DNA from: Amoeboaphelidium protococcarum X5
Lineage: Eukaryota; Fungi; Aphelidiomycota
Direction of reading: 5' to 3'
Assembly: GCA_023515725.1 (NCBI GenBank)
Contig: JALDTO010000215.1
Coordinates: 1 to 64,000 of the forward strand
DNA: 64,000 bases
A program made the translations under genes and the position numbers. The notes beneath the pieces were generated by a model, which was not told the DNA's origin, did not search any database, and was given only the letters and a program-made list of their open reading frames with translations. Below are positions 153-38,068 of the stretch, piece by piece; within the stretch, counting starts at the first letter, position 1; the number at the start of each line of letters is the position of its first letter.

Positions 153-550
153 CTGACCTTCTTTCCCAATCTATCATTACAAGTAATCTCAATCATTGCT
201 CAGTGATTGATTGTCATCGCACTAAAAAGGAAAAGAACTTTGTAGCAGCGCGAATATGATGTGTAGATCTAAATTTTTGAATCTTAAATCGTAAAGTATA
301 GCTCAATGACCAGTTCACTGCTGGTAAATGCCGACAGCTTACCGTAAAATTTAATGCCTATATTGTATCAATTAAGTTGCATGTTCAGTATCCAAGAAAC
401 TGATTACGCGATGAAGTTACGCTCTCGCGCTATCTTTTGATGGTAGTCAAGTCAAAATGTTGTTGATTAGATTAGATTATTCTCAACGATTGTCAAATGT
501 CTGAAGTTGAAACAATTATAAAGTAACTCCCCTCAAATAGAATAATTAGT

Positions 551-1423
551 ATGCCAATAATTTTAAGATCTACAGAAGATACTTCCGCTGAAAGACCTCA
601 GATTGTGACTCAGTAATCTTACAAGATTGCTCAAGTACCGTTGGGTACCAGATTACTGCTGATTGTGTGCAGCTCATTGTTCATCTTGCAGACAATAGTG
701 CCTGCTATCGACACTGATGTTGATTTAACGTTCAAGATGTGTCTTTCTCCTTACAATATTGGCAAGCATGGCTCTGTGTGGAGATTATTTACATTTTCGT
801 ATGCTCATGCTAATATTATACATTTCGCAATGAACATGATCAGCCTGGTGATGCTTGGCAGTCTGATTGAGAAAAGATACGGTACATTGGTGTACTTGCA
901 TCTGGTGTTTAGTCTGTCCACCTTGGCCGGAATATTACACACGTTCATTGTATGGATGGTAGTGGTATCGGGAGCTATTACGTAGAATAATCACTGGTTA
1001 CAGGGAGAATGTGTTGTGGGTATTAGTGGCGTATTGTTCTCTTTTCTCTTTATTGAGATGAAAACTCACCCGGAACAAGATCGCCGACTGTTTGGTCTCT
1101 TCTCGCTGCCGGCAAAGTATTACCCGGTCGCGTTGTTGCTCTTCATCCAGATCCTGTTCCCGGGATCATCCTTCATTGGGCATGCGTGTGGTATCGCTGT
1201 CGGGTACAGTGTTGCTCTACTGGAGGCTCAATTTCTTTACCCGTGGTTCTTGCGTAAACTGGAAGAACATCCCTGGTTGAAAGATTCACAACTATCGCAG
1301 AACTCTGCGTATGTTAAGATGCCTGACGTGCCACTAAGTCCTGGTGGTCACGCGCGCGCCGTCTATCTCAATAGCGAGTAAAGCGATCCCATTCTGAAGA
1401 ATAATAACAATACTAGTGCATGA
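551..1423 (+). CDS. Rhomboid intramembrane serine protease (RHBDD1/Rbd2-like)
   Basis: ATG 551 in frame with ORF fragments 641 and 1016 through TAA/TAG; WRLFT, HANIIHFAMNM, catalytic GISG and GH motifs; TGA 1421-1423. Confidence 0.88.
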
Positions 1424-1686
1424 GGTATTACTGCATTTGGTAGAATGAATGAGAGAGACATAGAGAGAGAGAGAGCGATGTTTTGTTCGAATGATTGTTT
1501 TAGGTGATGACTGTCTTTTGCATTTTGGAAATTGATGAATATTTTTTTGTTTCAGTTGAAATATTTCTCTTTTGTTCTTTTTGTTCCCTCTCCTTCTTTA
1601 TTGCGTTTGTTACTGATTATATTACTTGTATCAATTCAATAGTGCCATCTCGCTGGTATATTCATTATATAGAAAGTATTATTATC

Positions 1687-4515: not shown

Positions 4516-4615
4516 ATAGTCTGCTGTACTTGTTAGTGGTAAGATGGACTTTATTATCTGGCGTATATAAAGATGTAAAGTTCTATCGATATAACAATCC
4601 AATACATTACATTCA

Positions 4616-6586
4616 TCACCTCATATTCTGCATTTACTTTATCAACTTCTCCAACTCCTGGCCATAGTGTCTGATTTGAGCATCTTTATCAGCAATCAAT
4701 TATCTAAACTGATCAATGTCGTACGTTGATAAAAGACTTTTAATCTACTACTCCCTGACCTTTAACCCACGCTCCATTTTCTCAATTTTATTCACCAATT
4801 TAATGGCTGAAGACTTTTTGGGAGAACCAGATTCAATATCACTGTACAGTTGAAGCTTCTGGGACAGCTCAATCTGCTCCGCTTTCATCTAATCAATCAA
4901 TCCATTCAGCTGATGCAAATCATCATTCTTCTATTGAATTTACTTCTCTTGAGAATTCAACTTTTATCTTAAATCGTGAGCGAGTACTTTAAATTAATCA
5001 ATCTCCATTACCAACTACTGATTCTCCACCTGCTTCAACTACAAATCACTGGTGAGAGATTTCACCATCTACTTGAGACTTGACAACTCCAAATTCTCCG
5101 ACTTTAGTTTAGCGATTTAAGATTGAGCATCAGCATGTGATCTTCGAAGAATAACCAGCTCCTGCTAAAGATCATGCGATTGAGGACCAGAGAATTTAAC
5201 TTCATCCAACTTTTTGGTGAGATCAACGATGCGCTTCTAGCATTATTACTCCGACTTGAGCAGGCCTCTATTCTGCACTTCCAATGACTAATAATCCAAT
5301 TCTATTTGCTGCAGCTTTCTTTACAGCGAGGACTTTTCCAAAGATATCTTGTTCTTCTCTTTACTAAACTTGTCATAATCTCTGCGCAACTAGCCAATTT
5401 CACTCAACCTATTACCAAGTTATAGCTAATAATCTTTCATCTACATGTTGCCGTTACTACCACCTTGATTACCAGATACACCGTGCCGTATAGCGTCACT
5501 CAGCTACTATTCAAGAATCAAATTGTCATCTTTTAAAGACTAAATTTCATCTCTCAACTATTTCAACTACTCGGCTTACTTGAGAGACTTTACTGGAGAT
5601 AGTGATCGATTTCTTTTGGGAGATTGTTGACCATCCGCAGAGTAAATGTTGATAAGAGACTCAAAAGTTGACTCGGTTGGACGCACAGACTTTTAAGGTG
5701 ACCTTGACTATCTCTAGCTATTCATTAAATTTTACACTTATTGCTACAGTTGTCTCTTCTCCTGTTCATGCTACTCCTATTGCAGTTACAACTTCTACTT
5801 GAGCTTATTCACTTCTGAATTGATAATTACACTGTCCTAATCAACAGTGTTCTACTTTTATTCAGTTAAGGACTCTGGCTATTGAGGAGGCTTCAACGCG
5901 ACAATCTATTACTTTTACAATCGCAACTTCATCTGCTGTTACAAGTCCTTCATCTCCTATCGCAACTTGACATTATCTCTATGAGCCTCATCCAACATTT
6001 TCAGAGTCAAATCCAATTCATCCTAAACATTCATGTTATTCTAACTATGTTATTCATCTACTACTTTACTTAAATGGGAATCCTTTCCAAACTTCTTATT
6101 CTGATAGTGAATTGAAGACGATGATGATGGAGGAGCAAAAGAGGAGGAGTATCGAGTCTTCTTACCAGTCTACTTGTATTATTTAAAATCTGGCTTCGAT
6201 CCAGGAAGTACAGAGAGTGAAGTACGCTTCAAATATGGTTTCTTTACCACCACCTAATTCACATTATAATCATTTTGATTATCGTTATTTAAATAGTTAT
6301 TGTTCTTCTTTGTCTGTTTAGCACTTTATTACACAGAGTATGGAGTAGGTGTAGGTGCATTAGGAGTATGAATCGTATTCTCAGCATCCTCACCCAGAAT
6401 TCCATCACCACCACCATTATTATTATTATTATTGCCACCATTAAATATGTGCTAATCAAACTACAAGTCTCCGCACAGAGAACTTTCCAGCAGTTCCAAA
6501 TCACTCTTTATGCCACTCAATTCATCATCAATATACTAGAGATTGGTCAACTTGTCCAGATCAACTGAACCACTATGAGACTACAT
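4616..6586 (-). CDS. Long coiled-coil protein of unknown family (~656 aa)
   Basis: ATG 6586 to TGA 4618-4616 in one frame; Q/E/K/L-rich heptad-like sequence with a low-complexity N/S-rich N-terminus. Confidence 0.65.
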
Positions 6587-20624: not shown

Positions 20625-21199
20625 AACTGCTTTTCGATTGCTTTGTATTATACCGAAGCAACTATCGTTGTTGATTGAAAATCCTCACTGTTGAAGCCTC
20701 ATGTTTCAGCCAAAGCCTGTCCTCTTTTGCTTGTCATGTACTGCATGTATGAACTCTGCTTAGGTGTCCTTACCGCCTCCAAGCGTAATAATAGCTCATC
20801 TGGTGGTAACGATAGAAAAATGATATAGCGCGCTTCATCAATGTCATGTTATGTAGTAATCACGATTATGGCACTACATCATCGATTATTAATGTTGTCA
20901 TCTGAGGAGCGGTGTAACTGCATGCGTATTCTAATCTCAGATGACAGTAACACAGAGTGACTATGAGCCAATAGACTATTCTCATTTCGATCGGAATCTC
21001 TCAATGATCGTATCTGACACGATCATCCACTATTCGGTGTAACTTGCTGTGTAACATGCAACCTGACATGACTTGTGGTATAAATTGAGCAGATGACTAT
21101 TCTCACTTCTCTTTTCTATATAAATAAATAATATAACTTATTAATATCAAATATATACGTGATATACTAATATACTATACAATACAATCTATATATAAA

Positions 21200-21652
21200 A
21201 TGAGAGTTTAACTATTTGCAACTGCTATTCTGTCTCTGTCCGTTTATTAATGCGCGCCAATTATCGGTGGTGATCTACTGTCTAATGTGTAAAATCTGGC
21301 TGGCGGTGTGACTGGTGGTGCTTTAAAGCCTAATGGAGGAGGAATGGGTGTACCTGGCGATATCACTGGAGTTGCCGACAAAGTCCTCGGTAATTTCCAG
21401 TCCTATCTCAGTCACGGTGGTGTCAACTCGTTGTAACAATTACTGGGTGGCTAGTAGGGAATGGATGCATGGGGCGGGCTGTTGTCTGGCCTTAGTAATT
21501 TATTGACCCAGCAGGGTACTGGTGCTGCAAGTCCACAAGGCCTTCTGAACGGATTGACGTAGCAAGGTCCAGCTGCTTCAGCTGGAAGTTCCGCCAATTC
21601 AAAGTCACCTTCCACTCCTCCTCAGAACGCGTATGCTGCTTAATCTGCATGA
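21200..21652 (+). CDS. Small secreted Gly/Gln/Leu-rich protein SP1 (150 aa)
   Basis: MRVQLFATAILSLSVYQC-APIIGG signal peptide; open to TGA with TAR=Gln; absent from the ORF track. Confidence 0.8.
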
Positions 21653-22112
21653 TTGTCAGATTCAGTTTATTTTGAATGATGACTCAGAAATACATAGTTT
21701 TTTAATCAATACTTTTAAATCTTGATCGATTTTTCTAACAGATCGTGTTGTTTCAACTTTTGCATGTTTGGAGCGTTGTCGATTAAAGTTCAATTGGTTA
21801 AAATTTGGTTGAGCACAACACTATCAATTCTGGCATCCTGTTAAAGTTTGGTAGTTGAAGCCAAGGTATAGCAAAGAATTTGTCAGTGCCTTAATAAGTT
21901 TTGCAGTGTGCACCGACTAGGTGAATGTGATCTTACTAGAGACTTACAGTAAATCAATTCTTGTGTGACAGTCTTGGTCACATTAATATGAATTGTATCC
22001 AATCAAAGGGAATATGATCTATTAAAGATTTAACTATCCCATGGCTGCTGTTTCCTCTCTTCTCTGTATAAGTTTGATTCCAGTCTATATCTGATATTAT
22101 TCCACATACAAA

Positions 22113-22799
22113 ATGAAAGTGTGCATTATTGTTGCGTCCTGTCTCCTGTACTGTGGCGTCAATTCTCTCCCTCAAAGTTTACCTGCTCTTGGCGAGTCAA
22201 TCCCCGGAATTGTTAATGGTGCCGTTAATCGTGACTGGGGTAGTATGACTTCATCAATCTTAGATACTGTATCCAATGGTATGGCAGGTGGTGGCATCAA
22301 ATCTGGTGGTTCAAAGTGGGGCTCTGGCTCTGGCTCGGAATCAGGCACTTAAGCTGAGTCTATGGTGCAAAGTATGCAGGACGCGGCTGATGCAAGATTC
22401 TCTGGAGAGCCCTTTTCCTCGTCTGCAGGCTAGACTTCACGCTTTGATGCAAGCGCGGGTGCTCAAGCAATGGCCACTGGTATTGAGGACATGTCTGAGA
22501 GCAGATTTTCTGGCAGTCCATCTTCATCTCCTAGTTTCGGTATTGATGGTACTTCATCTGCTGCAGATGGTGTCTCCGGCATTGAATCTCGCGCAGGTAG
22601 TAGATTTGGCGATTCTGACTCTGGGTCGTCTCCTTCGAGATCTTCTAGTCTTGGCTCTGACTCATCTTCTTCAGGACTCGGCTCTGGCAGTCGTGGATTT
22701 GATGGTGGGTCTGGTGATGGAGGATTTGGCGGGAGGTCAGGCGGAGAATCAAGCGGCGGTGGCAGCGGTGGAAGTAAAGGCGGCAGATTTTCGGACTGA
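22113..22799 (+). CDS. Secreted Ser/Gly-rich repeat protein SP2 (family A)
   Basis: Signal peptide MKVCIIVASCLLYCGVNS-LPQ; three ~30-aa repeats ending ARFS/SRFS/SRFG; paralog of 24679. Confidence 0.85.
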
Positions 22800-23641
22800 A
22801 GATGTGATTAAAAGGAAAATCATCTTTGTAATTAAGACTAATAAATATCAACATAATTTTTAATAGTCTCAGCTTTAGATACTTTAATTATTGCCATTTC
22901 TGCAGGCTCTCTCTCTCTTATTTTTATTGAAAGGTGACGCGTGAATAGCGAAATAATTATAGAGTTTCTCTCATATTTTACAAAGTGTAACGTCTCGCGA
23001 TGTTCAGTAAAGACACACAAAAGTTAGTGAGATGAAGATGGCTTTGGCATTTATCACCTTGGCTGCGGAGATTGTCTTTCAATGCAAGGCCCTACACAAA
23101 ATATTTACGATAACTAATTCGTCATTGGTGTTTTGTCGTTAGAGTCTCTATGGCGTTGATTATGTGTTTGGTGATATATTCTTCACTGTGGCGTATCTAG
23201 CGGTACGCAAGGGTACGCACAGTGTACTAAAAAAATTGGGATTAGACACTTCTACTAGCCAATTTTCTACCTGATTCTGGATATCTCTTGGGATAAACTT
23301 TTTTTACGTGGGTGTGCGTACCTGGATATTGAAAGCTAGTTACGCCACTGATTCTTCATATGCAAGTCTACAATGTGATAGTTGGGTATGGTTATTACAT
23401 GAATAGTATCTGCTTGGAGATTTTGGTCTATGGCGTGTGAGATGCTACATCGATTCAATATAAACTCACTTACGATTGGCTTGGATGATTTGTGTAACGT
23501 TCTTAGGTCTGTAGCACAAACTGTATCCAATCTCCGTATACCTCGGCACACTTTAAAAGCATCCTGGCTACCAAGTATCTCTTCTTCTTCAATTAAAACA
23601 CATCTATTTATCCTATTTATATCTGCTATCTGAAACTGGTC

Positions 23642-23989
23642 ATGAGATTGTCTATCATCATTGTGTCTGCTCTGTTGGCTATCGGCGTGCAATCTATACC
23701 GCAAAGATCTGGTAGTCGCGGTCGCACTAGTGGTAACTCGATGCAAAGGGGAATGTCTGGTGGAAGGACCGGAAGCGCTAACTCTCGTACGACGCGACCC
23801 AGTGCTGATGCAGGAAGTATGGTTCGAAGGATGGAGAGTGCTGCCAACGACAGATTCTCCGGAAACTCAGGATCTCTATCTGCAAGCAGATCGTCGAGAA
23901 GCTCTAGTTCAAGGCCTAGTGGTGGGTTTTCTTCCGGTGAAAGTGGTGTTTCTTCGATTGCGTCTCGTGTGAGCAGCAGATTTGATTGA
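23642..23989 (+). CDS. Secreted Ser/Arg/Gly-rich protein SP3 (family A, short cationic member)
   Basis: Signal peptide MRLSIIIVSALLAIGVQS-IPQ; SMVRRMESAANDRFSG and GVSSIASRVSSRFD match family A repeats. Confidence 0.85.
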   Translation: MRLSIIIVSALLAIGVQSIPQRSGSRGRTSGNSMQRGMSGGRTGSANSRTTRPSADAGSMVRRMESAANDRFSGNSGSLSASRSSRSSSSRPSGGFSSGESGVSSIASRVSSRFD

Positions 23990-24678
23990 TGCCGATTGAT
24001 TATGTTGTCAAAATGATACCCTTGAAATTAAAATTTAAAAGTAATTCTTGTATTTCAAATATATACTACGATGACCCATCAACGTTTTTATTCTGTTTTC
24101 TAAAGATTCTTTATATGATACTTCGGAAGAATATGAATTACAATCCGGTAGTATGTGCTGGTTTTTAGTGCAGTTTATATCTGCCAAATTAAGAGTAGAT
24201 GTTTTCTGGTGCTACGTTAAGACTTAACTTTGTAATAAGCACTTAAATATGACGTGCCACAGCGATACATTTGATATATTACTTTGCAGATGCTCTCTCT
24301 ACTGTAATTATCAAGTGTGTGGTAATACGCGTGAAACTACTAAATAAATCAATGCTCTTCATTTCGTCTACTTCACTTGTATAGGATAGTAATAGCGCGT
24401 AAGAGGATGATAATTTAGATTGTGGGCACTATAGCGTCTGATGGTATCGTAGTTGACTCCTTGGTATGACAATTATTACACTTAATTGCACAGGATGGAT
24501 TTGTATTCAGTTCGTGCTACGTGGTGTCATTGCAAATTATTTACCATTGGGCAAGCATGATTTGCACAACCTTCTAAGACACGGATCACACGCTGCAATT
24601 TGTGCTCAAAAGCATCTGGGCTATTGAATTACTTCTATTCTCTGAGTTTAATCATACTGTATATTTAATTTAATAATC

Positions 24679-25605
24679 ATGAAATTGTCAATAACTATTG
24701 CTTCTGTGTTAGTATCCCTGGGTGTGTACTCTTTACCTCAAGGACGGGGATGGGGCGAGTCCATATCTGGTATTCCCGCCGGGGCTATGTCGCAGGATTG
24801 GGGTGGTATGAGCTAGTCCATTCAAGACACCGCGTCCAATGGTATTTCAGCTTAAGGTACCTCTGCTACGACTACCGGTCAGTAACAGTCTGATTCTCGA
24901 GCTGCAAGCATGGTTCAAGGTATGGAGGACGCTGCTAATGCAAGATTCTCCGACAGTCCAGCATCTCAATTCGCTGGCAGGCCATCCAGCTTCGACGCCT
25001 CTTCAGGTGCTGAGTCTATGGCAACTGGCATCGAGAATAGTGCTGGATCTCGATGGTCGGGTAGTCCGTCTGGGCCCTCTAGTTTTGGTATTGCAGGCGC
25101 ACCATCCGCAGCTGATGGCGTGGCTTCAATTGCATCTCGTACTGGGAGTAGGTTTGGTGACTCTGATCCAAGTAGCGGAAGATTTGCGTCATTAACATCT
25201 CGCGATTCAGATTCATCTTCAGGATCTTTTGGTCCCAGCTCAAAGCCATCATCCTCGTTCTCATCAGATGGCCCCAGCTAAAATGTAGGCAGCAGTGATA
25301 GTAAAGCAAGTAGTGCAGTGGTGAGTAAAGGTGATAGCATCGGGGGCACGAAAGCATCTTCATCATTGTCATCAGGAGGTCCTCCAAGCAGTAGTAGCGG
25401 CATCTCTAGTTCAAGTACAGGCTCTGGCCCGGGAAAGAGCGCAAGTTCTAGTATTGGTGGCGGATCTAGCCCAAGTGGAAGCCCAAGCAGTAGCGGGTCA
25501 GGAAGTGGGTCAGGAAGTGGATCGGGAAGTGGATCTGGAAGTGGATCTGGTAGTGGGTCTGGAAGTGGATCAGGAGGAGGTAAAGGCTCCAAAGGCGGGG
25601 ATTGA
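24679..25605 (+). CDS. Secreted Ser/Gly-rich repeat protein SP4 with (GS)n tail (family A)
   Basis: Signal peptide MKLSITIASVLVSLGVYS-LPQ; SMVQGMEDAANARFS repeats; joins ORF fragments 24910 and 25318; TGA 25603-25605. Confidence 0.85.
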
Positions 25606-26123
25606 ACTCAATGTGCTATGTAATTAAAATTTATTGTAAGTTTATTAATGGGATATTGTTTTTACTGGTATTTTTTAACATTTTCGATTGAACTATAAGT
25701 TGGGAGAGTTCAACTAAAGTTTTCAAGTACAGTGGTATTGCCGTTGTCCCATTTTACCAATGCTCGGTTAGCACTGTGTCTAGATATGATTCGTCCATTT
25801 TGGCAATTCTATGATTGAGACAAAGCTTATTCTAGATGTATGTTTAACACTGCAATTTTAGTAAAATGGGCTCAAATACAAGAGTTGTAAAATTGCGGAG
25901 TGAACCGTGTTTGAAGATGCCAAAGTGTCATGATCGCATAGCATGCACTCTTATCAGGCCATTGAAAAATATTTTGGTCATATTTTAACCATCTACTACC
26001 TTATGATAGAATGCAGTGCATTTGCTGTGGCTTCTTACCACCTGCAACATGCCAAGGCTCGGCTGTCACGCGTGCCTCTGCCCGACTCGTGTCGTTGACT
26101 GATCATCTATGCGTGCTGTAGCA

Positions 26124-26150
26124 TGTAACTTTGTCGAATTGCTATAAAAG
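26124..26150 (+). promoter_or_regulatory. TGTAAC + TATAAAAG core promoter of SP5 (same arrangement upstream of SP6-SP9)
   Basis: TGTAAC starts 19-21 nt before TATAAA/TTTAAAAG at 26124, 28724, 30395, 31508 and 33641. Confidence 0.6.
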
Positions 26151-26253
26151 GCGGCCTATGGTATGAAATCTTTTATTCCTCTTACCTATCAATTTAATTA
26201 ATATCTAATCTAATTGTACTATTGTTAATTCATACCTATTCCTAATCTCGAAA

Positions 26254-26679
26254 ATGAAATTGTCTGCTTATTTAATTGCATCTGTTTGCGTCCTATCAAC
26301 TTCTGTTATGTCCGCTCCTACTCTGGGCCATTTGTGGCATGGAGGCCTGTGGCATGGAGGAGGCCATGGATCTCTGAACATTGACATCAATGGCGGCGGA
26401 GGCGGAGGTGGTGGATCTGGCAGTGGAGATGCGAATGCCTAAGCCGGTGCTTCTGCATATCAATCTGGCAGCGCGTCAGCTAATGCACAAGCCTCTGCTG
26501 GCCCTGCCCCTGCTCCTGCTGCTGAAGCAAGTGGTGGAGGAGGAGGAGGTGGATCCTTCTCTATCAGCGGTGGCGGCGGCGGTGGTGGCGGCCTCGGTGG
26601 AGGTGGCGGCGGAGGATCCCTATCGATTAGTGGTGGTGGCGGTGGTGGAGCAAGAGCAAGCCCATATGGCCCACACTGA
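26254..26679 (+). CDS. Secreted Gly-rich, His/Trp-tipped protein SP5 (family B)
   Basis: Signal peptide, APTLGHLWHGGLWHGG, poly-Gly blocks separated by SLSIS, C-terminal SPYGPH-TGA. Confidence 0.85.
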
Positions 26680-27049
26680 TTGTCCTCTTAAAGCGATGTC
26701 ATTAATGAATGACCATGATTTAAATAATATTTTAATTTTAATCTTGTGATATCTACTATGTAATCTTCTCCATTATTTTTCGTAAGCTGTAACTCTTTTT
26801 ATAACTGATCAACGCAGGCTTCAGGGATAACCTTTTATGAACAACAGTCTTTTTACTGAGAAACTGTTGAGCTGAAACCGTTTTGACGCGTTTCATTCAC
26901 TTACTCGCTCTCTTTATCACACAAGACTTGAAATAATTGTAAATATACTTGTTTATACTAGATGGTGACAATTTTTCAATGATAGTTCCTAGAAATGCAA
27001 ATAATTAGTTTTCACCTCAGTCTGAGTGCTATGTGACTCGTAACAATTG

Positions 27050-28255
27050 ATGGAGCTATACAGATAGTAACAACTAATTGCCGGGATGTCGCTGAGTAGC
27101 AGCTTATCAAGAACTTATTAAGTAATGTGTCTGCGTGAAGCTTACGCTTGGAGTTAAATGAATGGTATTCGAACGGTGAACTAATGGAGCAGTAGGGAGG
27201 GAGAAACGTTGGCTGGATATCTTGGCTTGAAGATTGATGGTGGTCGTCTTCAATTGCTTAAAGACTTTGATCCAAGAATTGCTAACTAGAAAGATTGCCA
27301 GCTGCACTTCACTTACCAATGGTTTAGTTCTAAAGGCTCATTGCATTATTACTAAGTAGTCCAAGCCCAGTTGAGCGTTTTAAATGTGGTCCTCGCTCTT
27401 TCCTCCAAGGCGTTGAAGCCACTAGAATGAAGATTCAAAGGAATGTCCCTAATCACGTGCCAGAAATTGAGCTATCTGGCTACTGCATTTGCTGCATTGA
27501 TTGATACCTGGGACAGGTATACAGTGGATGCGATGGCCGGGAAAGGAGCGGGCGAAAGTCGTCGATTGACGGCGATCACTTGCGATTAACATTGGACGAG
27601 CCCAATTGGAATTTTATAAAGTGAGTTGGCGAGAGATCTCTTACGGTTGAGAATGCCGAACGCTCTCTCTGTGGAACGAACGTCTATAGGACGAGTAATA
27701 ATTGAACTATTGGGTTCGTTATAAAGCAACACATCTCGAATTTTGAGTTTACTACAGAAGTCGATGGAAAGAGCTTATTATGATACGAAAGGAGTAAAGA
27801 GTAGAATATGATCGGGCTACAAATGCTATATCAGAAATTATGGATGGTAACATTAACTATAAATGTCGCGGCAAAGTTGAATTTGGTCTTGATGATGCGT
27901 AGTTTGAGAGTAAATAGACTATTCAACAGTCTTTTGTAAGTACTTCATGGCAAACGTTAAGAGTCTATGATATCCTGTCATCTATCTAAAACGAATACTT
28001 AACCTCCGAAACTGCTCTATGCTGCGGCCGAAATGTGCGAAAGCTCTGGTTGGCGTGTAAAGTATTGTAGATACTCATAAGTTCTTTCACAGTGATATCT
28101 TGGCCGTGGAGAATTTGGTGAATGACACTAAAGCTATAGTAGCAGGGCTTCAAAGACACCCTTATCTGTGTATCAATGCTAACGGCAATATCAAGAGGGA
28201 AGGAGGATTTACGCAGCTTGGCAAGCGCGCAATTCAGTTACAGAGGATATCGTGA
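27050..28255 (+). pseudogene. Degenerate coding-like segment of unknown origin between the SP5/SP6 duplicates
   Basis: Several 70-130 codon open stretches in shifting frames, broken by TGA; higher GC than intergenic DNA; no recognised motif. Confidence 0.3.
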
Positions 28256-28855
28256 GGATTGAGTTCTTGTATAACAAAAGTGACATGTCTCCATGTGCTT
28301 GATAAACACTTTATCTGAGGACGATTTTCGTGATCCTCCTCTTTGACAATTCTACGACAAAGACAAAGCCGGTTGTGGATGTATGCTCAACACTGTAATA
28401 TTAATAAAAAGAGTAAATACAAGATAGTTTGAATGTTAAAGCGTTGTTAAATCGTCAAGTGAGTCGTGCTTGATTAGGCTGATTTATCATTGAACGCATC
28501 GCATGCACACTTATGAAGCTCTTTTGAAAATTGTCGCTGTCTTAGAGCCTTTGGATTCATCCCAAATGTATTCCCCCGTTTGAGTATGTATGTACACTAC
28601 TTTATCATAGAATGTAACGCATTTTCTATGGCTCCTAGGCATTGCTACATGCCAAGGTCCGCCTGTTACACGTGTCTCTACCCAACGCGTACTTTGGACG
28701 AATTATCAATGCGTGATGTAGCATGTAACTTTGTCAATTAGCTTTAAAAGGAGCTTTATGGTATGAAATCTTTTAATCCTCTTACTCATCAATTTTATTC
28801 AATATCTAATCTAATTGTACTATTGTTAATTCACATACCTATTCCTAATCTCGAA

Positions 28856-29275
28856 ATGAAATTGTCTGCTTATTTAATTGCATCCGTCTGTGTCCTATCA
28901 ACTTCTGTCATGTCAGCTCCTACTCTGGGTCATCTGTGGCATGGAGGCCATCTGTGGCATAAAAGTTATCTGAACATTGACATCAATGGCAAAGGCGGCG
29001 GAGGTGGAGGTGGGGGTAGTGGTGGTGGTGGATCTGGCGGTGCCTAAGCCGATGCATCAGCTCAAGCATCTGGTAGCGCGTCAGCAAATGCACAAGCCTC
29101 TGCTGGCCCTGCTCCTGCTCCTGCTGCTGAAGCAAGTAGTGGAGGAGGTGGAGGTGGATCCCTCTCTATCAGCGGTGGCGGTGGAGGTCTAGGTGGAGGT
29201 GGTGGCGGAGGATCCCTCTCTATTAGTGGTGGTGGCGGTGGTGGAGTAAGATCTAGCCCATATGGCCCACACTGA
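28856..29275 (+). CDS. Secreted Gly-rich protein SP6 (family B, recent paralog of SP5)
   Basis: Identical signal peptide MKLSAYLIASVCVLSTSVMS-APTLGHLWHGG; ends SPYGPH-TGA; flanks homologous to those of SP5. Confidence 0.85.
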
Positions 29276-30518
29276 TTGTCCTCTCGCAGCGATGAAATTA
29301 ATGAATGAAGATGATCTCGGTGATTTAATGAATGCTTTGTTGTTAATCTTGTGATATCTAGTTTCAACTCTTCATCATCTTTTTCGTATGCAGGCACTGG
29401 GAAAGTAAACGCACTTTGTAAGCAGCAATCTTTCTACTGAGAAACAACTTGCAACTTATTAAAGAACTGATATATAGTGCTCTTCGTACTTGATGGTTAC
29501 AGTTTTAACGATAGTTCCCAGAAGTTAAATAACTATCCCATTTTGACAATGAACGCACGCGTCTATGTCGTCAACATTGGCATTTGTTAGTCTTGATATT
29601 ATTTGCCCGATTAATTGAGCATTATTCTGCTATTAATATTAGATAGAAATCATTCCACTTGATATTGTATTGCTGAGTAGAATATGGTGCATTTAGTTTT
29701 CTCCATTAATACTGAAACCAAAATCGGTAAAAGCATAAATTTTGGAGGCAATTTCGCGAATTGTAAAGTATGTGATCAATAGTGAGAATATCGTGTCAGA
29801 GTCTACGCGTCCCGTAAGGACAAAATTAAAACGCGGAGAGTCTTGCCATGAGCGGTCCAATAACTCCTTACCAACGATCGGCTGGGTAGCTACCTCTGCT
29901 CCTCCCGGTGTTTATCTGCCTGCATGAGTCAATGCAGCGCCTGGCCCATTTCGGTGTCTGGTGTCGTCATCTGTGCCCTTGGTTAACCGCCTGTTTTAAT
30001 TACGGCGATCGCGTCACCGGGAGTTATCTCTAAGGTATCCTCTCATAATAAAGATTTTACTGGTTGTGAGCAAAAGGTGATTGTCAAAGTTTAAAAATGG
30101 GATTGTATCTACTAAATAACTAAGCGTATTTCTCCACTTTTGATAGTGTATACATATGTTCACAACGCCATAGTTTGAACATCAATAGATGCATTGTCGA
30201 ATTCCCTTTAGCCCCCACTTTTTACTCGTTTAATGCACCTACGTCATTTGTATCTAAATCTTTAACTAGAGTTACAACGTCATCGATCGATGATTTCGTA
30301 ATACGTGATCAATATCACTGGGTGTAGTATCGCGTACGTTTACTGATTTGTGACCACTACAGAATAGTCACTGGACGGACACAAATCAGTCAGATGTAAC
30401 AAGCTTCAGTACCCGTATAAATTGCAGGATTTTAAATAATTTTTCTTTTTCTTTTTATAATCAATTAATTTTTAAGTTAATCTAATAACTATTATCCTAT
30501 TTGTAACTGAACTGAAAA

Positions 30519-30737
30519 ATGAAATTATTATTGTTAATCTTGATTGTAGCTGTGTTGTTTCAAGTAACGCTGGCGACTCCGACCAAACTGAAGCACTTGA
30601 AAAAGGGACACGGTGGTGGCGATGGTGATAAATCTGGTGGTGGTGACTGTGGTGATAAATAAGGTGGTGGCGATGGTGACGGTCACGGCAAGTGGAAAGG
30701 CAAGCACAAGGGCAAAGGCTACAGTCACGGCAAATGA
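30519..30737 (+). CDS. Secreted Gly/Lys/His-rich peptide SP7 (72 aa)
   Basis: MKLLLLILIVAVLFQVTLA-TPTKLKHLKKGHGGGDGDKSGGGDCGDKQGGGDGDGHGKWKGKHKGKGYSHGK-TGA; one internal TAA; TATA at 30416. Confidence 0.8.
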
Positions 30738-31636
30738 ATTGCCAATTGCTGATGCTATTGCTACTTGCCATCAAGACACCAGGCTAATAGTGACATTTAA
30801 CGTAATATCTTGTATTTAATATAATGAAATTTTATTCCTTACAATTATATATTTTTATTTAACGAAGACTTACGCGTGGGCTGAGCGAAAGTCCTTGCAA
30901 TCTTGATCCACTATCACGCATCATCCATCTTCAAAATCAATGTATCTAGAACATCAACGCCGAAGCTGATGCTTAAATTGACTTGGTCATTCGGAGTCTG
31001 TCGTACAATCATAGATCAGGTTGCTTGAATTACACACGCGGACTGACCAGCTACAGTATACTTGTAATGTGATATCGCCTACTGCTGTAGCTGGACAGGG
31101 TTGCCCTAAAATCAAAATCCTGAGAAGTTTCACTGCTATATTGTGCAATAAAAAAATATGAAGATTCTGCTTTCAAGTATTTGATAACTGCTTCAAGTAA
31201 ACTCTGGATTGCAAGCAATGTAAAAAAACGCTGCCAATTTCGTGCCTCATTGCTTTTGCTAAAGGTAAAGTGTTACATACCAACCTCAATCAGTATATTA
31301 CGTGCAGATGGTGTATTTGACTGTGAAATTAAACGCTGGTGATGATGTACTCTAACATCGACTCTCTTAGTGCCAAGACTTTAGATATTAACTGGCTCCC
31401 AGTTACAGAATTTAATGTAACCTATGAACACAGGGCCATCTAATCAGAGCAATGCTGTAACTGCTGCTGACCCGGTCACAAACTTTAATTGGCATTGTCT
31501 GGGATGATGTAACGCGGTTAGTATTCACTTTAAAAGCGGTTATAGCGTACATTCTCTCTATTCCTCCACTACAATCAACTAATAATTAATACTCTAATAG
31601 TCTCAATAATCTATCTTAACTAATACCTATTACAAC

Positions 31637-32059
31637 ATGAGAACTACTATCTATATCATTGCTGCTCTTTCTCTGATCTCTAGCTCCTTGGCTGTTCCAA
31701 CTTTTGGTCATGGCAAAATCGATATTGCAGGTAAATTGTCCCTGAAATTGTGTAAGCTCGGACTTGGTCATTGTCCAGATGACGGAGGCTGCTCTACTGG
31801 TTCATGCGGTGCTAGTGCTAGTGCAAACGCGAATGCCAATGCCAATGCAAATGCTAATGCTGGTGGCAGTCCTTATGGAGCGCCTGGTGCAAACGCGATG
31901 GCAAGCGCTAATGCAGGTGCAAGTGCTGGATCTGGTGCTGGTGGCTGTGGCAGTAGTGCATGTCAGCCATCTCCTGCTCCTTCTCCACCATCTCCTGCTC
32001 CTTCTCCGCCATCTCCTGCTCCTGCTCCATCACGTCCATCACCTTACCAGTCCATGTGA
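31637..32059 (+). CDS. Secreted Cys/Ala/Pro-rich protein SP8 (family C)
   Basis: Signal peptide, CKLGLGHCPDDGGCSTGSCG, (AN)n, SPAPSPP repeats, SPYQSM end. Confidence 0.85.
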   Translation: MRTTIYIIAALSLISSSLAVPTFGHGKIDIAGKLSLKLCKLGLGHCPDDGGCSTGSCGASASANANANANANANAGGSPYGAPGANAMASANAGASAGSGAGGCGSSACQPSPAPSPPSPAPSPPSPAPAPSRPSPYQSM

Positions 32060-32200
32060 GCGTGTTGAATGATATCGTATCTAAAATATAACTAATATTA
32101 TTGCAACTAATCTATTCACTTGCCTTGTTTGAGTTTCATCGTGCATCACAAGCTCTAACGCCTGAATTTAAAAATATTAAAATTTTATATAGTCAACAAA

Positions 32201-32779
32201 TCACGCCAGCTACTCATCTTTAACACGTTTGTGTTTATGCTTGTGCTTAACCTTCTTCGGTTTGACAGTGGCTTCAGTCTTGATGGTACCAACGATTGAC
32301 AAGTTACCAGATGATGCTTTTACATTAGTGATACTGAAGCTTAGAAGAGTTCCAACTTATATTTGAACTTCATTATCTTCATCAGACACCCAGCATGACG
32401 CGTCAGCATCCCATCGATATCGATCAATCTACCTTGCTGGTATCACAGCATTTACCATGCCCATGACAGTGAGCGCGATGTAATCTTAAGACTGCTTCTT
32501 CACCTTAGCCTGTACCATATCACCGGACTGTGGGGAGAATGAGAGCACTCGGCAGTAGAACGATAATTACATGAATGGACAATCTTTCAAAATACGAGCC
32601 TTGTTGGATGCTAATTTGATATCACTGTAAGCCAAGATGATACCATTAACGCGCTCGTCATACTTTAGAATCATCGTGTTCAGTTTCTTCTGTATACTTC
32701 CTAATATATCCCTACTACAACTTGGAGCCAAATGCATATCGAAATGCACAACACTCTCTGTAAGCCCGTTATTGAGCAT
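32201..32779 (-). CDS. RPA43: RNA polymerase I subunit RPA43
   Basis: MHLAP...KLNTMILKYDERVNGIILAYSDIK...CPF...FSPQSGDMVQAKVKKQSQDYIALTVMGMVNAVIP; Lys-rich tail; TGA. Confidence 0.85.
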
Positions 32780-33762
32780 ATCGGACAATTTTTCAGATTT
32801 TCAATTTTTGTTTGAAGTGATAAATTCGCCGTTAAAGATTGGCGATTGGATCCAATGGAATGTGTTATGATCATTCGGCGCCGCCTGTCTGTCTTAATAA
32901 TGTAGTCGCGATGCCGTGATAGAAGTACTTCAATATTTAGATGACAGCATGTTTATTTGGGAGTAATTTAAATATTCTGATATCCTGTCGCCGCTGTAAA
33001 CCGTAAATGAGAATTTCGGCCACAGCGATGTTGGCGCCCGTAATAATTGAATTAATTTAAAGCCTGTTCAAAGATGGTTATATCTATTTTTTAAATTTGG
33101 CACTGGACGCTGTATTGCGTTGACCTCTATGAACGGCCAGTTTGTCTTATTGTCAGTCTCAAAAGTCTTTCCCTAATTAACTGTAACTGCAATAGAAAAA
33201 TTATAGGGCCGATCAAGTCCAGCAGAGCACCCTTTACAAGTCGTAATCACGCTGACATAACTGCTATAGTATGAATCTGAGCACCGCTCGTTAAATTGTA
33301 CGCTGGTAATGCATGGTCAACATCTGCCTTTCCTCAATGTAAAATGATACTAATGTGACCATCAAGACTCAATGTTACGCGTTGACGAAGTAGTTGGCCT
33401 AATCATCCAACGCTAATGTACCATTGTCAGTATTAATGCCATTAGCGGATATACATATGTAAACTATTGTAATTCTAATACCTCCATGCAGCTCACGCGT
33501 AAAGTCTTCGTTTAATTGCTATTTTGACTAAATCACTTGTATTCCTTGTGTCGCTTTGTGACCAGCGAATGGTCTAGTCAAATCCATGCCGAGCGAATGC
33601 TGACCCCGGTCACAAACTATGATTGGTATATTAATAAAAATGTAACGCTGACTAAACACCTTTAAAAGCTGGTACAGCCTTCTGATTACTTCTTCCTTTT
33701 ATCAATTAGTCTAATTACCAGTAATAATTAATCATCTGCATTCTAATCATAATTTTTTAAAC

Positions 33763-34323
33763 ATGAGATCCACTATCTATATTATCGCTGCTCTGTATCT
33801 GATTTCAAGCTCTCTTGCGGTTCCTACACTTGGTCATCATGACAAAGGCCACCATAAGGACCTTAAGGCTATGAAGATGTGCAAGCTTGGACTTGGACCT
33901 TGTCCAGGTGACGGTGGTTGCTCTACTGGCTCGTGTGGTCCAGCGCCAGCTCCTGGCCCAATGCCTGGTCCAAAGCCCGAACCAATGCCTGGCCCAATGC
34001 CTGTTCCTATGCCTGGTCCTGGTCCTGCTCCTGGTCCAATGCCTAATCCTGCTCCTGGTCCTGCTCCTGGTCCAATGCCTAATCCTGCTCCTGGTCCTGC
34101 TCCTGGTCCAATGCCGGGTCCTATGCCAGATCCTATGCCGGGTCCAATGCCAGGTCCTGCTCCTGGTCCGGCTCCTGGTCCTATGCCTAAACCGGCTCCT
34201 GGTCCAGAGTGTGATGATAAAAAAGGTGGCAAGAGCCCATATGAACCGCCAAAGTAAAAGCCGCAACCAGCTGGTGGATGTGGTGCTGGTCCTTGCCCAC
34301 CATCTCCGTACAAGTCAGGGTGA
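33763..34323 (+). CDS. Secreted Pro/Gly/Met-rich protein SP9 (family C, paralog of SP8)
   Basis: Same signal peptide type and CKLGLGPCPGDGGCSTGSCG head; (PAPG/PMPG)n repeats; SPYEPP and terminal SPYKSG-TGA. Confidence 0.85.
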
Positions 34324-34509
34324 GTGTGTTTATTGATAAGCAACTTGAATTATATTTGTCATGATATTTCATTAAGTCTAAGCATTCTTCTCATTACTTC
34401 ATTACTTCAGTCACACAATTGCAATTTAATGCACGACTTCAGGGCGTGACACACGTGTAACATTTAATGCGCAAAAACCGTCTTCACTAAAATCATACTC
34501 TGGCCTTGA

Positions 34510-34840
34510 AGAAGCTTACCAAAGTTTCCTCCTAAATTGCAATTGACGCTTCACCAGTAATTCCTCAACATAACGCGTAGATCTTCCGTGAATATTAATC
34601 ATATATTGTACAGATGCCATAACGTTGCTCATACCCTTGGCCGTGAGCGCGATGTTGTCTCAATGTTGTCTCAAGACGAATCCTTCACCTTAGCCTGCAC
34701 CAACTTGAGGGCAGAATGCGACACACAGAGCAATAGAATGATAAAAGTATGAATGGACAGTTTTATTAATACACGCCTTGTTGGATGCTAATGTGATATC
34801 TTAAGTCAAACTGATGCAGTTAACACCCTCTTCATACTGG
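34510..34840 (-). pseudogene. Decayed duplicate fragment of RPA43
   Basis: cttcaccttagcctgcacca, atgaatggaca and gccttgttggatgctaatgtgatatc match 32498-32622, with deletions and a small internal duplication. Confidence 0.75.
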
Positions 34841-35184
34841 TGAAAGCATAATTATCGCTGGTTTTCAAAACTTTACCGCGTAACATTATAGCTGCCAAGA
34901 TGCTCTTAGAGCTGGGTCAAAAACGGTGGTCCTCACAATTAGATGGCGTATTCAGTTCTTAATGTCTTTCTATCCTTTTTGTTTATATCCTCTAATTTCT
35001 ATAGTGCTAATGACTAGTGGAATTCCATGGTCATTTAGATTCAGGCAACCGTGAGCTAAAAATATCTCGGGATATCAACCGTTTCCACTTTAGTTAAATG
35101 ACCACCTTTCATCTTGTATTTAATTCCTCATTATTAGTATTCATATCGAGCTGAACTTGATATTAAAGTCGAGCCTGAACATTT

Positions 35185-36471
35185 ATGCATTCCTCGTCCC
35201 TGTTAGCTATTGTTGCTGTGATTAGCGGCTAAGCGCTCGCTGCAAACGTTGTGATCTCCAACACTGCAGTTGGTAAGTTTGCCTATATTCAGAATTTCTT
35301 TGGTCCTGGTAGCTGTTCTGGTCAACCGGACTCTATTATCGCTTATGCCAATTATGATTATGCATGTCCGGCTGATGTTTGTAATGCATTGACAGCCACC
35401 CTTGGTAATCGTGCTTCTGTTAATTTCACGCAAGTGTCCAAATGTGCATCAAATGGCAAGATGTTTGACACTTCTGGATACACCGAGTAGTATGCTGTTA
35501 CATCCACTTTTGCAAGTACAGATTGCAGTGGTGATGCTTATCAGCTGAGCGCTTCAAAGGCTAATACTTGCATTCCAGTGACTGGACAACCGCTGCCTTA
35601 CGTCTATCATTCCTGTAACTCGACCGCGTATGATTTTAAGACATGCCATGACAGTGCTTGTACCAACTGCACTGCCGCATAAACCTTTACGCACAAGTGT
35701 CAGCAACTAGCTACTAGCTCATTTGCCACAGTATGTCTTGGTCCCAGTAACGGATTCAGTGCCTCTGTTCCATTGGTCCCTGCACCAGTATTCAATCCGA
35801 TTACTGATACTGCTAATAAGACCAATATCAAGAGTGCTTCGCCTGACATTTCTTACTTCTTTACTGTGCCGTAGACATTGAGCAGGAACTTTGTTGCTTA
35901 GAATGGATTTTTGACCAGCAATTGCTCAGATACGTAGCCCGATTTTGTTCTGTCTACCCCTACCAACGGTACCTGTGGAACTGTGAACGCTTAATGCTCA
36001 TCTCTGAATGTGACGAGTAACTCCACCGCCCTAGCGTATAGAAGCGCATCCTCCCAGTGCTCTACTAAGAAGGTGTTTAACGTCACTGGATGGTCTGACC
36101 GTGTTGCAGCCACTTTTATTTATGAAAAGTCTACCAAGTGCCAGGGTGATCCAGACTATGTGACTGTTGTGAAAGCCGGTGTCTGTCTGCCTGCTCCGTC
36201 TGGTATTTATAGTTATCAGAAGTATGACTGTAAATACTCGCAACTGGTATTAGCGCAATGCTTTGATAACATGTGCCGCAATTGCTCTGCCACTAGTTAC
36301 TCTAACGGAAGATGTCTGGCAGCAGGTGCTAGCGGATCTATCGGAGCTGTATGCTTGGATCAGAGCTCACAGTACAGATCTCCATATTATGGTACTTCTG
36401 ATGGTGTGCGCGTAAAGCTGGTGTCTGCGTACACGTTTGTGGCCATGCTCTTGTTCGTTTTGATCAACTGA
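35185..36471 (+). CDS. Secreted Cys-rich protein with internal domain duplication, likely GPI-anchored (family D, 428 aa)
   Basis: Signal peptide; repeated CSG(Q/D)P..., KAxxC.P, C.D..C.NC motifs; many NxS/T sites; hydrophobic C-terminus AYTFVAMLLFVLIN. Confidence 0.82.
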
Positions 36472-36787
36472 GACTGTTTACATGTGATGAAGAGGTATAT
36501 GAATGAATGATTGAATGAATGAATGAATAGTGTACAGAAAATTTCTAAATGTCGCATTACTCGTAGACGATCATTGTTTTAATCATCCCATTAAGGTACT
36601 ATCAGATCTCACCGAGCAATTTAAAAATAGAATATTCGAATTCCTATTGTATCCACGATGGTAACAGATTTCTTGTGATAGAGTTTTATTTTACTGTAGT
36701 GCTTCAACCTCTTAAGACCCTTTTACCTTCTGTAAAAGGCACTACACCTACAGGATTAGCTTAATAATTATAAAGCAATTTTGTAAA

Positions 36788-38068
36788 ATGTTTATCTGTG
36801 ACACGGTTGTGATAGCTATAATGTTTGGTGTCTAAGTTTCATCTGCTAACGTGACTTTGTCCGCCTCAGCATTAGGCAAGTTTTCTGGTATACTAACATA
36901 TTATGACTCAGATAAATGCTCTGGTTAGCCGTCTTAAATTCTCGGATATTCCATCAATATGAACGACAGCTGCCCGAGCAACACCTGCTTGACTGGCGCT
37001 TCTAACCTGACTAACAAAGCACCTGTTGATTACACTTTGGTGACCAGATGTGCACCTGCTGGTAAAGTCTTTGACACCGATAACTTCACTCAACCATTGG
37101 CCATGACAAACTCCTATGACAGCCCGGATTGCTCGGGCGATCCATATCTTGTGGTCGCGTAGAAGGCCAACACTTGTGTCCCTATGCTTGGAAACGACAT
37201 TCCGTATTCTTAATACTCGTGCGATGATGATTCTTATCAGTACAAGGCATGCTATGATAGTGCATGTACCAATTGTACTGCGCCGACAAACGTGGTGTAG
37301 CAATGCATTTCACTAGGTTCTAGCTCTTTAGGCACTGTGTGTTTGAACTCTGGCAGCAACTTTACCGCTTCAGTCCCGTATCTATCTTTCCCGCTACTAG
37401 ATCTAGATAAGTATATAAGACCTAGCATCGCTTATATTCTTGCGGTACCTAACACTGTCTCCGGTACATACAAATAAAGTAATGAGTATTTGAGTGGCAA
37501 CTGCTCAAGTGCGTAGCCTGATTTAGTCGTGACTTCAAAGGTAAAAAACGCTTCTGCTTGCGTAATCAACGGTGACTATCAGTGTAAATAGTTGAATAAA
37601 ACCAGCCTTAACACTTTGGTTAGTTATAACAGTAAGTCCGAGTAGTGTGTGAGCTAATAGGTGATGAATGTAACTGGCTGGACTGAGCGCGTCGTGGTTA
37701 TTTACAAGTTCGATGCGTCTTACAAGTGCTAAGGTGATCCTGATCAAGCGACAATTGTCAAGGCTGGGCTCTGCTTACCAATGGTATCTGGTCTATACAC
37801 CCACTAGAAATACGAGTGTGGCCAAACCAATGGTCTCACCTTGTCCAAGTGTTTCGATAGTCAGTGTAGTAATTGCAGCGTGTCTCCTATGGGCAATTAA
37901 AATTGTGAGCCTTAAGGTTAAGTTGCATCAGTGGGAACTGTGTGTCTAGACAGTTCTTCGCAGTACAAAGCTCCATTCGTTCCAAAATCTGGCGCTACAC
38001 TGGTTCAAGCCACTTTAGTATCCACGTATTCTGCTGTGGCTTTGACCATTATGATGGTTTTGATGTGA
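36788..38068 (+). CDS. Tandem paralog of the family D Cys-rich putative GPI protein (426 aa)
   Basis: Colinear Cys pattern with 35185; CSGDPYLVVAQKANTCVP, NVTGWTERV, CQGDPD; hydrophobic C-terminus; TGA 38066-38068. Confidence 0.82.

Follow-up and report, generated by a model that had tools for sequence, protein, structure and literature searches.

What do eleven neighbouring genes, all read in one direction and all apparently encoding secreted proteins, make for a parasite of algae? The question is raised by a gene array at positions 21200-38068 of a 64,000-nucleotide stretch of the Amoeboaphelidium protococcarum genome (hereafter the window), which comprises positions 1-64000 of contig C214 in a 23.6-Mb, 346-contig assembly. 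As the sister group of Fungi, aphelids also do harm as pests in the mass culture of algae; to our knowledge, microscopy is the only source of descriptions of their cyst, adhesive and penetration tube, and we know of no wall or tube protein. Here, we propose with moderate confidence that the array is a lineage-specific cluster of exported proteins that would make up or decorate one of the parasite's extracellular layers.

Before asking what the genes do, it has to be settled how they are read. The only stop codon in use is TGA, with a 1706-codon open reading frame (ORF) at 58718-63835 on the minus strand carrying 75 in-frame TAA or TAG codons, and the reading of TAA and TAG as Gln in A. protococcarum is documented in the literature. 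Once read in this way, the array consists of 11 uninterrupted plus-strand ORFs, at the coordinates and in the common orientation proposed by a first-pass annotation made from the sequence. Since nine of the 11 hold at least one in-frame TAA or TAG, the standard code breaks them, as had been said of most members, and the spacers of the array (~320-2170 bp) are longer than those of its flanks (~80-1000 bp, mostly below 300 bp), again as previously noted. The genes, nine of them here called SP1 to SP9 and two Cys-rich ones called C1 and C2, are as follows (all on the plus strand; each line ends with the number of in-frame TAA/TAG codons).

21200-21652, plus strand: SP1, 150 amino acids (aa), a singleton rich in Gly, Leu, Ser, Ala and Gln; 8
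22113-22799, plus strand: SP2, 228 aa, Ser/Gly-rich, with five repeats that have RF(S/G/D) ends; 2
23642-23989, plus strand: SP3, 115 aa, Ser/Arg/Gly-rich, SP2-4 family; 0
24679-25605, plus strand: SP4, 308 aa, Ser/Gly-rich, SP2-4 family, with a (GS)n tail; 4
26254-26679, plus strand: SP5, 141 aa, 41% Gly, with a His/Trp head and a C-terminal SPYGPH; 1
28853-29275, plus strand: SP6, 140 aa, tandem paralog of SP5; 1
30519-30737, plus strand: SP7, 72 aa, a Gly/Lys/Asp/His-rich peptide precursor; 1
31637-32106 (coding 31637-32059), plus strand: SP8, 140 aa, with a Cys head, an Ala/Asn repeat and a Ser-Pro tail; poly(A) site at 32106; 0
33763-34323, plus strand: SP9, 186 aa, paralog of SP8, its Cys head followed by a (Pro-X)n core, 34% Pro; 1
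35185-36471, plus strand: C1, 428 aa, with a signal peptide, two 12-Cys beta-rich domains and a tail like a glycosylphosphatidylinositol (GPI) signal; 7
36788-38068, plus strand: C2, 426 aa, tandem paralog of C1; 17

Are the products exported? By a Kyte-Doolittle heuristic and inspection, all 11 N-termini resemble signal peptides, in line with the first-pass annotation. Each has a short n-region (with a single Lys or Arg in nine of the 11 and none in C1 and C2) and a hydrophobic core starting at residue 3-8, for which the best 8-residue Kyte-Doolittle mean lies between 2.1 and 4.0; a small-x-small cleavage motif follows near residue 18-21 (for example, with the cut marked by a slash, VNS/LP, VQS/IP, VMS/AP, TLA/TP, SLA/VP and ALA/AN). 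Of 24 other long ORFs in the window, about 4 satisfy this crude filter as well. Judged by these N-termini, a cluster of putatively exported or surface proteins is well supported.

Several members of the array are already in GenBank as ‘hypothetical protein’, including near-identical A. protococcarum entries for C1 (KAI3648208.1 and KAI3630582.1). The start codons of the GenBank models differ from ours in places: the SP3 model (KAI3632757.1, 183 aa, window positions 23438-23989) starts 68 codons upstream, reads through the promoter and buries the signal peptide, while the 115-aa form opens with the signal peptide and is found as an identical protein in another strain. For C2, the gene at the second copy of the locus described below is KAI3630583.1, with a GenBank model that starts 12 codons later. 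The exact SP8 protein is absent from the protein collection searched. Where TGA alone ends translation, gene models with N-termini that are too long can conceal a signal peptide.

That these are real genes follows from a second, homeologous copy of the locus (C264:1830000-1866000), which is 81-92% identical in nucleotides and contains two extra insertions of 3.9 and 7.3 kb. Ten of the 11 ORFs are intact in this copy, SP3 being reduced to a 42-aa C-terminal match; the SP2 protein is 93% identical between the copies and SP7 81%. For the ten genes with an intact homeolog, we estimated the ratio of nonsynonymous to synonymous substitution rates (dN/dS) by the Nei-Gojobori method under genetic code 6: 0.41 for SP1, 0.17 for SP2, 0.33 for SP4, 0.11 for SP5, 0.07 for SP6, 0.67 for SP7, 0.18 for SP8, 0.27 for SP9, 0.07 for C1 and 0.32 for C2, with a pooled value of 0.22 and a dS of 0.17-0.36 (~0.23). 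Purifying selection acts on all ten compared genes. In nine of them, dN/dS is lower in the annotated frame than in any of the other five frames, the exception being the 72-codon SP7, and this, together with the ten retained ORFs, upholds the earlier calls of genes on the plus strand. We do not regard the antisense ORFs that overlap SP2, SP4 and SP9 as genes, since the sense frame has the lower dN/dS and a signal peptide. The gene for Gpi16, a subunit of the GPI transamidase (PF04113, E 6.5e-49), likewise lies on two contigs (C155:651472-652497 and C214:354286-355320), and both doublings fit a hybrid or duplicated genome; a hybrid genome has reportedly been found in A. protococcarum.

Evidence of expression comes from assembled contigs of four RNA-type runs placed on 30480-36475: X6 and X9, from one 2021 study with one organism label, X14, a probable RNA run, and X15, a freshwater metatranscriptome. 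SP7 is covered at 30517-30704 (X6), 30540-30780 (X9) and 30482-30728 (X14), SP8 at 31620-32080 by an X9 contig colinear with the gene, SP9 at 33753-34040 (X9) and 33725-34205 (X14), and C1 at 34507-36372 (X9) and 34177-35822 (X6), while X15 yields coding pieces of SP8, SP9 and C1. One X6 contig ends at 32106 and continues as 21 non-templated A's, a poly(A) tail 47 nucleotides (nt) past the SP8 stop, which fixes the strand of the SP8 transcript. The X6 and X9 contigs are colinear with the models of all four genes and have no splice joints, as expected from the first-pass description of the genes as intronless. Depth is 860-1750 for SP7 and SP8, 280-5650 for C1, 8-10 for spacers and 75-140 for the housekeeping gene RPA43, and since each contig gives a single figure, we read it only as transcription well above background. 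Hence SP7, SP8, SP9 and C1 are transcribed and unspliced. The Pro-rich repeat of SP9 (34016-34053) is 36 nt shorter in X14, with 6-nt insertions nearby in X6 and X9, which is length variation between strains. The source of X6-X9 is probably a dual RNA-seq study of infected Graesiella emersonii and A. protococcarum from the same year (PMC8657485).

Might the array then be a cluster of host-directed effectors that, once delivered to the host, would suppress algal defence or remodel the wall or contents of the alga? Smut effector clusters of the Ustilago maydis type, which are expressed during infection, also consist of co-oriented novel signal-peptide genes in tandem paralog groups within a parasite genome, and here, too, at least three adjacent secreted-type genes of unknown function occur in paralog groups. 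The long spacers, the insertion of repeats and the restriction of the small orphan families to one species speak for such a cluster, as does expression in runs that are probably from infected cultures, for which up-regulated putative effectors have been reported (PMC8657485). However, purifying selection is moderate to strong (dN/dS 0.07-0.41 in nine of ten genes), with no sign of the diversifying selection that marks many effectors, and the extreme Gly/Ser/Pro composition and GPI-type tails of the aphelid products, unlike those of smuts, fit a wall or surface better than action inside a host. In addition, the aphelid trophont engulfs host cytoplasm by phagocytosis, which makes the need for translocated effectors doubtful. 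We therefore consider an effector cluster unlikely, and continue with an extracellular layer as the preferred reading.

How did such an array arise? Its members are related in several ways. SP2, SP3 and SP4 have a common repeat type, A-x-S-M-x-x-G-x-E...SRF(S/G). SP5 and SP6 lie in a duplication (25995-26787 and 28596-29391) with 81% identity that includes the promoter, the Cys heads of SP8 and SP9 are 74% identical in DNA and 69% in protein, and C1 and C2 are 41% identical. Moreover, the 5' modules of SP5-SP9 (promoter, 5' untranslated region (5'UTR), signal peptide and a first stretch PT(x)xH) can be aligned with one another, and we thus take these five genes as one superfamily with middles that have diverged into different simple repeats. 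Gly makes up 38-41% of SP5-7 and Pro 34% of SP9, while SP8 has Ser-Pro repeats; four of the five end in SPY plus three residues. SP1 has a promoter element in common with them and no similarity in coding sequence. The four paralog groups and two singletons of the first-pass annotation are therefore borne out as far as kinship within SP2-4, SP5-6, SP8-9 and C1/C2 is concerned, but not in the independence of the groups, as SP5-SP9 share one 5' module.

In six-frame searches of the whole genome, the SP1, SP2-4, SP5/6, SP7 and SP8/9 families were found only in the array and its homeolog, with the exception of one weak SP2-like match on contig C235. The Cys-rich domain has ten copies genome-wide, four in the array, four in the homeolog and two in nearly identical single-domain genes elsewhere (C264:228590-229093 and C264:1179004-1179507, both on the minus strand). 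Each of these two adjoins an ORF resembling a hybrid histidine kinase/response regulator, in what looks like a segmental duplication within C264. Apart from these two copies, the families are confined to the locus and its homeolog, and the clustering claimed for them stands. The array is lineage-specific and was built mainly by tandem duplication.

The code-6 read-through served for description, dN/dS and the tree, and proteins with in-frame TAA or TAG were searched as pieces or as database entries (P0001 and P0002). Pfam returned only noise for ten pieces of array proteins; SP9 gave a weak match to Trypan_PARP (E 0.0014) due to its composition. A length-limited homolog search with a piece of SP4 found, outside the genome, only a Logan fragment of SP4 itself, while that with SP8, under the same length window, filled up with low-complexity candidates and missed even SP8, which makes its blank uninformative. 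The novelty proposed for the proteins is thus retained for the low-complexity families, with no relatives outside the species within reach of these searches, and only in part for C1 and C2, given their relatives in metagenomes and a predicted fold like that of DUF3430 (see below).

A further common element lies in the promoters. The pattern TGTAAC-N(10-26)-TWTAAAW occurs six times in the window, all on the plus strand, against 0.55 in shuffled sequence, each time 122-150 nt 5' of the ATG of an array gene and nowhere else in the window.

21050-21086, plus strand: promoter module of SP1
26124-26150, plus strand: promoter module of SP5
28724-28750, plus strand: promoter module of SP6
30395-30423, plus strand: promoter module of SP7
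31508-31536, plus strand: promoter module of SP8
33641-33668, plus strand: promoter module of SP9

All six elements are kept at matching positions in the homeolog. Over their proximal 200 nt, most array promoters show 85-100% identity between the two copies of the locus, more than expected under neutrality. With a stricter version of the pattern there are 35 matches genome-wide, 11 of them in the two locus copies (six in the window and five in the homeolog).

Duplication could, on the other hand, be the whole story: the genes might have no common function and simply lie in a duplication-tolerant region, where low-complexity genes are born easily under a single-stop code and C1 and C2 are passengers. 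Duplication does account for most of the co-orientation and most of the sharing of the module, the region has acquired repeats and a decayed RPA43 while its homeolog has lost SP3, and a TGA-only stop makes long ORFs easy, as the many overlapping antisense ORFs attest. Yet four unrelated signal-peptide families side by side would be improbable at a background of ~17%, the ten compared genes are under purifying selection, and SP1 carries the promoter module without being kin in its coding sequence. An array with no shared function is accordingly rather unlikely in our view, and a common extracellular role remains the preferred reading.

The array is interrupted by few other features.

27020-28275 (approximate), strand not assigned: dispersed repeat of 1.25 kb, in the SP5-SP6 spacer
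26900-26953, strand not assigned: short repeat of 54 bp, in the SP5-SP6 spacer
32201-32800, minus strand: RPA43, a subunit of RNA polymerase I, between SP8 and SP9
34630-34838, strand not assigned: decayed RPA43 relic, between SP9 and C1, 3' of SP9

RPA43 is identified by an RPA43_OB domain (PF17875) at 32363-32533 on the minus strand, which scores 34.8 bits, above the cut-off, with its in-frame neighbours included, and by an N-terminal piece at 32570-32800 on the same strand; it is the sole housekeeping gene within the array. The relic is 70% identical to 32456-32664 and has no long ORF left, and its position downstream of SP9 indicates that an SP8-RPA43 unit was duplicated and that the second RPA43 then decayed. 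The 1.25-kb repeat has six copies of ~80% identity on contigs C214, C233, C264 and C98, and the 54-bp element at least 15 copies genome-wide; both may be relics of mobile elements. The first-pass annotation had the array interrupted only by RPA43 and relics, which is correct for RPA43 and for the single relic in the SP9-C1 spacer; the SP5-SP6 spacer contains the dispersed repeat and no RPA43 relic.

What kind of proteins are C1 and C2? Each consists of a signal peptide and two homologous domains of ~180 residues with 12 Cys each (24 Cys per protein), with Cys fully conserved in five alignment columns and almost so in another seven, and each domain contains 1-4 [YFW]xxxxC motifs. N-x-S/T sequons number 10 in C1 against 5.7 expected (20 of 500 shuffles reach the observed count) and 11 in C2 against 5.3 expected (2 of 500). 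The proteins end in ...GTSDGVRVKLVSAYTFVAMLLFVLIN and ...KSGATLVQATLVSTYSAVALTIMMVLM, hydrophobic tails that follow small residues and lack a cytosolic extension, with a Kyte-Doolittle mean of 2.4 over the last 12 residues; by inspection, the homologs end alike. The description of both as Cys-rich and GPI-like is thus sound as to Cys-richness, and the GPI-signal-like tails and the presence of Gpi16 in the genome agree with it, while the anchor itself rests on inspection of the tails.

Searches of Pfam with full C1 and C2 gave only noise, and a sequence profile search of the Protein Data Bank (PDB) gave no match. A full HMMER scan of 1.84 billion cluster representatives returned only ten proteins, two of them the aphelid's own C1-type and C2-type; most of the others share this architecture but have one domain and a length of 200-246 residues. 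A profile search added ~20 further relatives of the C-domain, none with a Pfam domain.

Structure prediction places the C-domain among all-beta proteins. Of two AlphaFold2 models, the second has 11 strands, a predicted local distance difference test (pLDDT) of 85.2 and a predicted template modelling (pTM) score of 0.81, and was searched against the PDB and viral libraries only. No match to a solved or viral structure was found with Foldseek (first model against the PDB, second against viral structures) or with VIA-align (both models, best Z 4.1). The first model (pLDDT 76.5) reached a template modelling (TM) score of 0.61 over 143 residues to the predicted model of an amoebozoan cluster of PF11912 (DUF3430), and of 0.60 to an oomycete cluster, which was also the top feature-based match. 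In Dictyostelium, the DUF3430 proteins BadA-C are secreted, rich in Cys and aromatic residues, and bacteriolytic, and a related family has been noted in Phytophthora (PMC7886984). Like these, C1 and C2 combine a signal peptide, at least eight conserved Cys and Y/FxxxxC motifs, features described for that family (PMC7886984), with a Cys-rich, aromatic-rich all-beta domain of ~170-200 residues; unlike them, they have two 12-Cys domains and a GPI-like tail, and none of the four aphelid domains matches the Pfam model.

Membership of C1 and C2 in DUF3430 was rejected on sequence. PF11912 (gathering score 28.6 bits) had no match in C1, C2 or their pieces, and among 29 relatives of the C-domain only one, P0004, matched, at 21.6 bits (E 2.4e-4) and thus below threshold; a six-frame search of the whole genome with PF11912 also found nothing, in a run where the controls gave no match either. 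As the sequence match fails, we place C1 and C2 outside DUF3430, in an unnamed family that resembles it in architecture.

The likeness to BadA-BadC (PMC7886984) nonetheless prompts a third alternative, an antimicrobial kit in which SP5-7 peptides and Bad-like C1 and C2 act against bacteria that compete for the dying alga. The best structural look-alike is the PF11912 cluster, with its TM of 0.61, and mature SP7 would be a cationic Gly/His/Lys peptide of 53 residues with a net charge of +6; furthermore, bacteria are reported to respond opportunistically to A. protococcarum infection (PMC9343445). Against this, the PF11912 sequence test fails, a GPI anchor would ill suit a soluble lytic factor, and SP2-4, SP8 and SP9 are acidic or neutral and Ser- or Pro-rich, unlike known antimicrobial peptides. 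We regard an antimicrobial kit as very doubtful, and return to C1 and C2 as candidate surface proteins.

Relatives of the C-domain also occur outside aphelids. The nearest ones of known context are the five that lie on long contigs (P0018, P0023, P0026, P0027 and P0035; L016:10001-10690, L018:10001-10669, L020:10001-10702, L021:10001-10645 and L022:10001-10567). All five come from dense, intron-free neighbourhoods in soil or forest metagenomes, and each combines a signal peptide with a single domain and ends in a GPI-signal-like tail. Their neighbours include a D5-type primase-helicase, AEP_C962R with DUF5906, DUF5760, SUI1, NMT and a Frag1/PGAP2-like gene, the pair of NMT and Frag1 (PGAP2-like) being kept in three of the five loci. 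On account of the D5 primase-helicase, AEP_C962R, DUF5760 and their companions, we consider these contigs giant-virus-like. A maximum-likelihood tree groups 21 metagenomic sequences, these five among them, in a single clade (97/98), which is sister (99/97) to the aphelid single-domain gene and two metagenomic proteins, with the clades of the C1 and C2 domains outside; since the tree is unrooted, no direction of transfer follows. No relatives of P0023 were found in IMG/VR, and none of C1 in the metagenomes of the Joint Genome Institute (JGI).

In light of these results, what might the role of the array be? The products would leave the cell through the endoplasmic reticulum and jointly form or decorate a layer, which could be the surface of the zoospore or cyst, the matrix of the cyst wall, the penetration tube, or the lining of the sporangium. 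SP1-SP9 would be small, low-complexity and probably disordered proteins with cleavable signal peptides, rich in Gly, Ser, Pro, Ala/Asn or His/Lys, and SP5-SP9 would descend from one ancestor of which the promoter, signal peptide and PT(x)xH start were retained while the middles were replaced by simple repeats. As matrix or glue, these low-complexity proteins may be cross-linked by way of Tyr or Cys, while C1 and C2 would be the predicted N-glycosylated, disulfide-rich, membrane-bound surface components that are most likely GPI-anchored. A structural extracellular role is suggested by composition, terminal Cys and Tyr, GPI-type tails, and selection that is purifying and not diversifying. The cyst wall, adhesion or infection function put forward by the first-pass annotation would be plausible, judging from sequence.

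Comparable compositions are known elsewhere. Plant and algal wall proteins (glycine-rich proteins, extensins and proline-rich proteins) and trypanosome procyclins resemble the array products in their Gly content of 38-41%, Ser-Pro repeats and (Pro-X)n rods, but there is no homology, and SP1-9 have no GPI tail. Polar tube proteins (PTP) of microsporidia, a related lineage, are also similar: PTP1 and PTP2 have signal peptides and a Cys-flanked Pro-rich repeat core, as in SP8 and SP9, and are encoded by tandem genes on the same strand, and the PTP and spore wall proteins (SWP) are rapidly evolving, composition-defined proteins of organisms that, like aphelids, have an infection tube in their life cycle. 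The two lack sequence similarity, no PTP family having matched SP8 or SP9 pieces in the Pfam scan. Homologs of microsporidian PTP and SWP are reported to be absent from the transcriptome of the aphelid Paraphelidium (PMC6299283). A more specific version of our proposal would make the array products the protein components of the cyst wall and penetration tube, with Cys-capped Pro or Ala/Asn rods (SP8 and SP9) and an SP5-7 Gly/His matrix as functional counterparts of microsporidian polar tube and spore wall proteins, switched on together through a dedicated TGTAAC-TATA module, and C1 and C2 as GPI-anchored organisers or adhesins of the cyst membrane. We hold this version to be decidedly improbable, and prefer the broader proposal of an extracellular layer.

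Several points weigh against even the broader proposal. Nothing ties any product to a wall, a glue or a tube. The signal-peptide and GPI calls were made by heuristic and inspection, and the evidence of expression covers four genes through assembled contigs, which can neither rank genes nor resolve stages. The SP9-C1 spacer of ~860 bp (34330-35185, including the RPA43 relic) is covered as deeply as C1, and may represent a long 5'UTR, overlapping transcripts or non-coding RNA. C1 and C2 have no sequence in common with the SP families, and their adjacency to the SP genes may be accidental. The co-regulation suggested by the first-pass annotation finds support in a locus-specific module at six of the 11 genes but does not extend to all of them: the upstream regions of SP2, SP4, C1 and C2 are without it, and that of SP3 has TGTAAC ~52 nt from a TATA-like box, wider than in the other six, so that the strict module is missing. 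As the SP5/6 and SP8/9 duplicates share the module by descent, it stands for ~4 independent promoters. Outside the locus copies, the stricter pattern has 24 matches against 25 for a control pattern, which is no enrichment, and the TGTAAC-TATA module was rejected as the mark of a wider regulon.

Our findings bear on the biology of A. protococcarum and its relatives in three ways. First, with signal peptides buried in models that start upstream, the predicted secretomes of this species are probably too small. Second, the Cys-rich domain of C1 and C2 stands for an unnamed family that also has members in uncultured giant viruses, as represented by giant-virus-like contigs. Third, the array offers a short list of candidate proteins, exportable, conserved and transcribed where tested, for the surface, wall or infection apparatus of the parasite.

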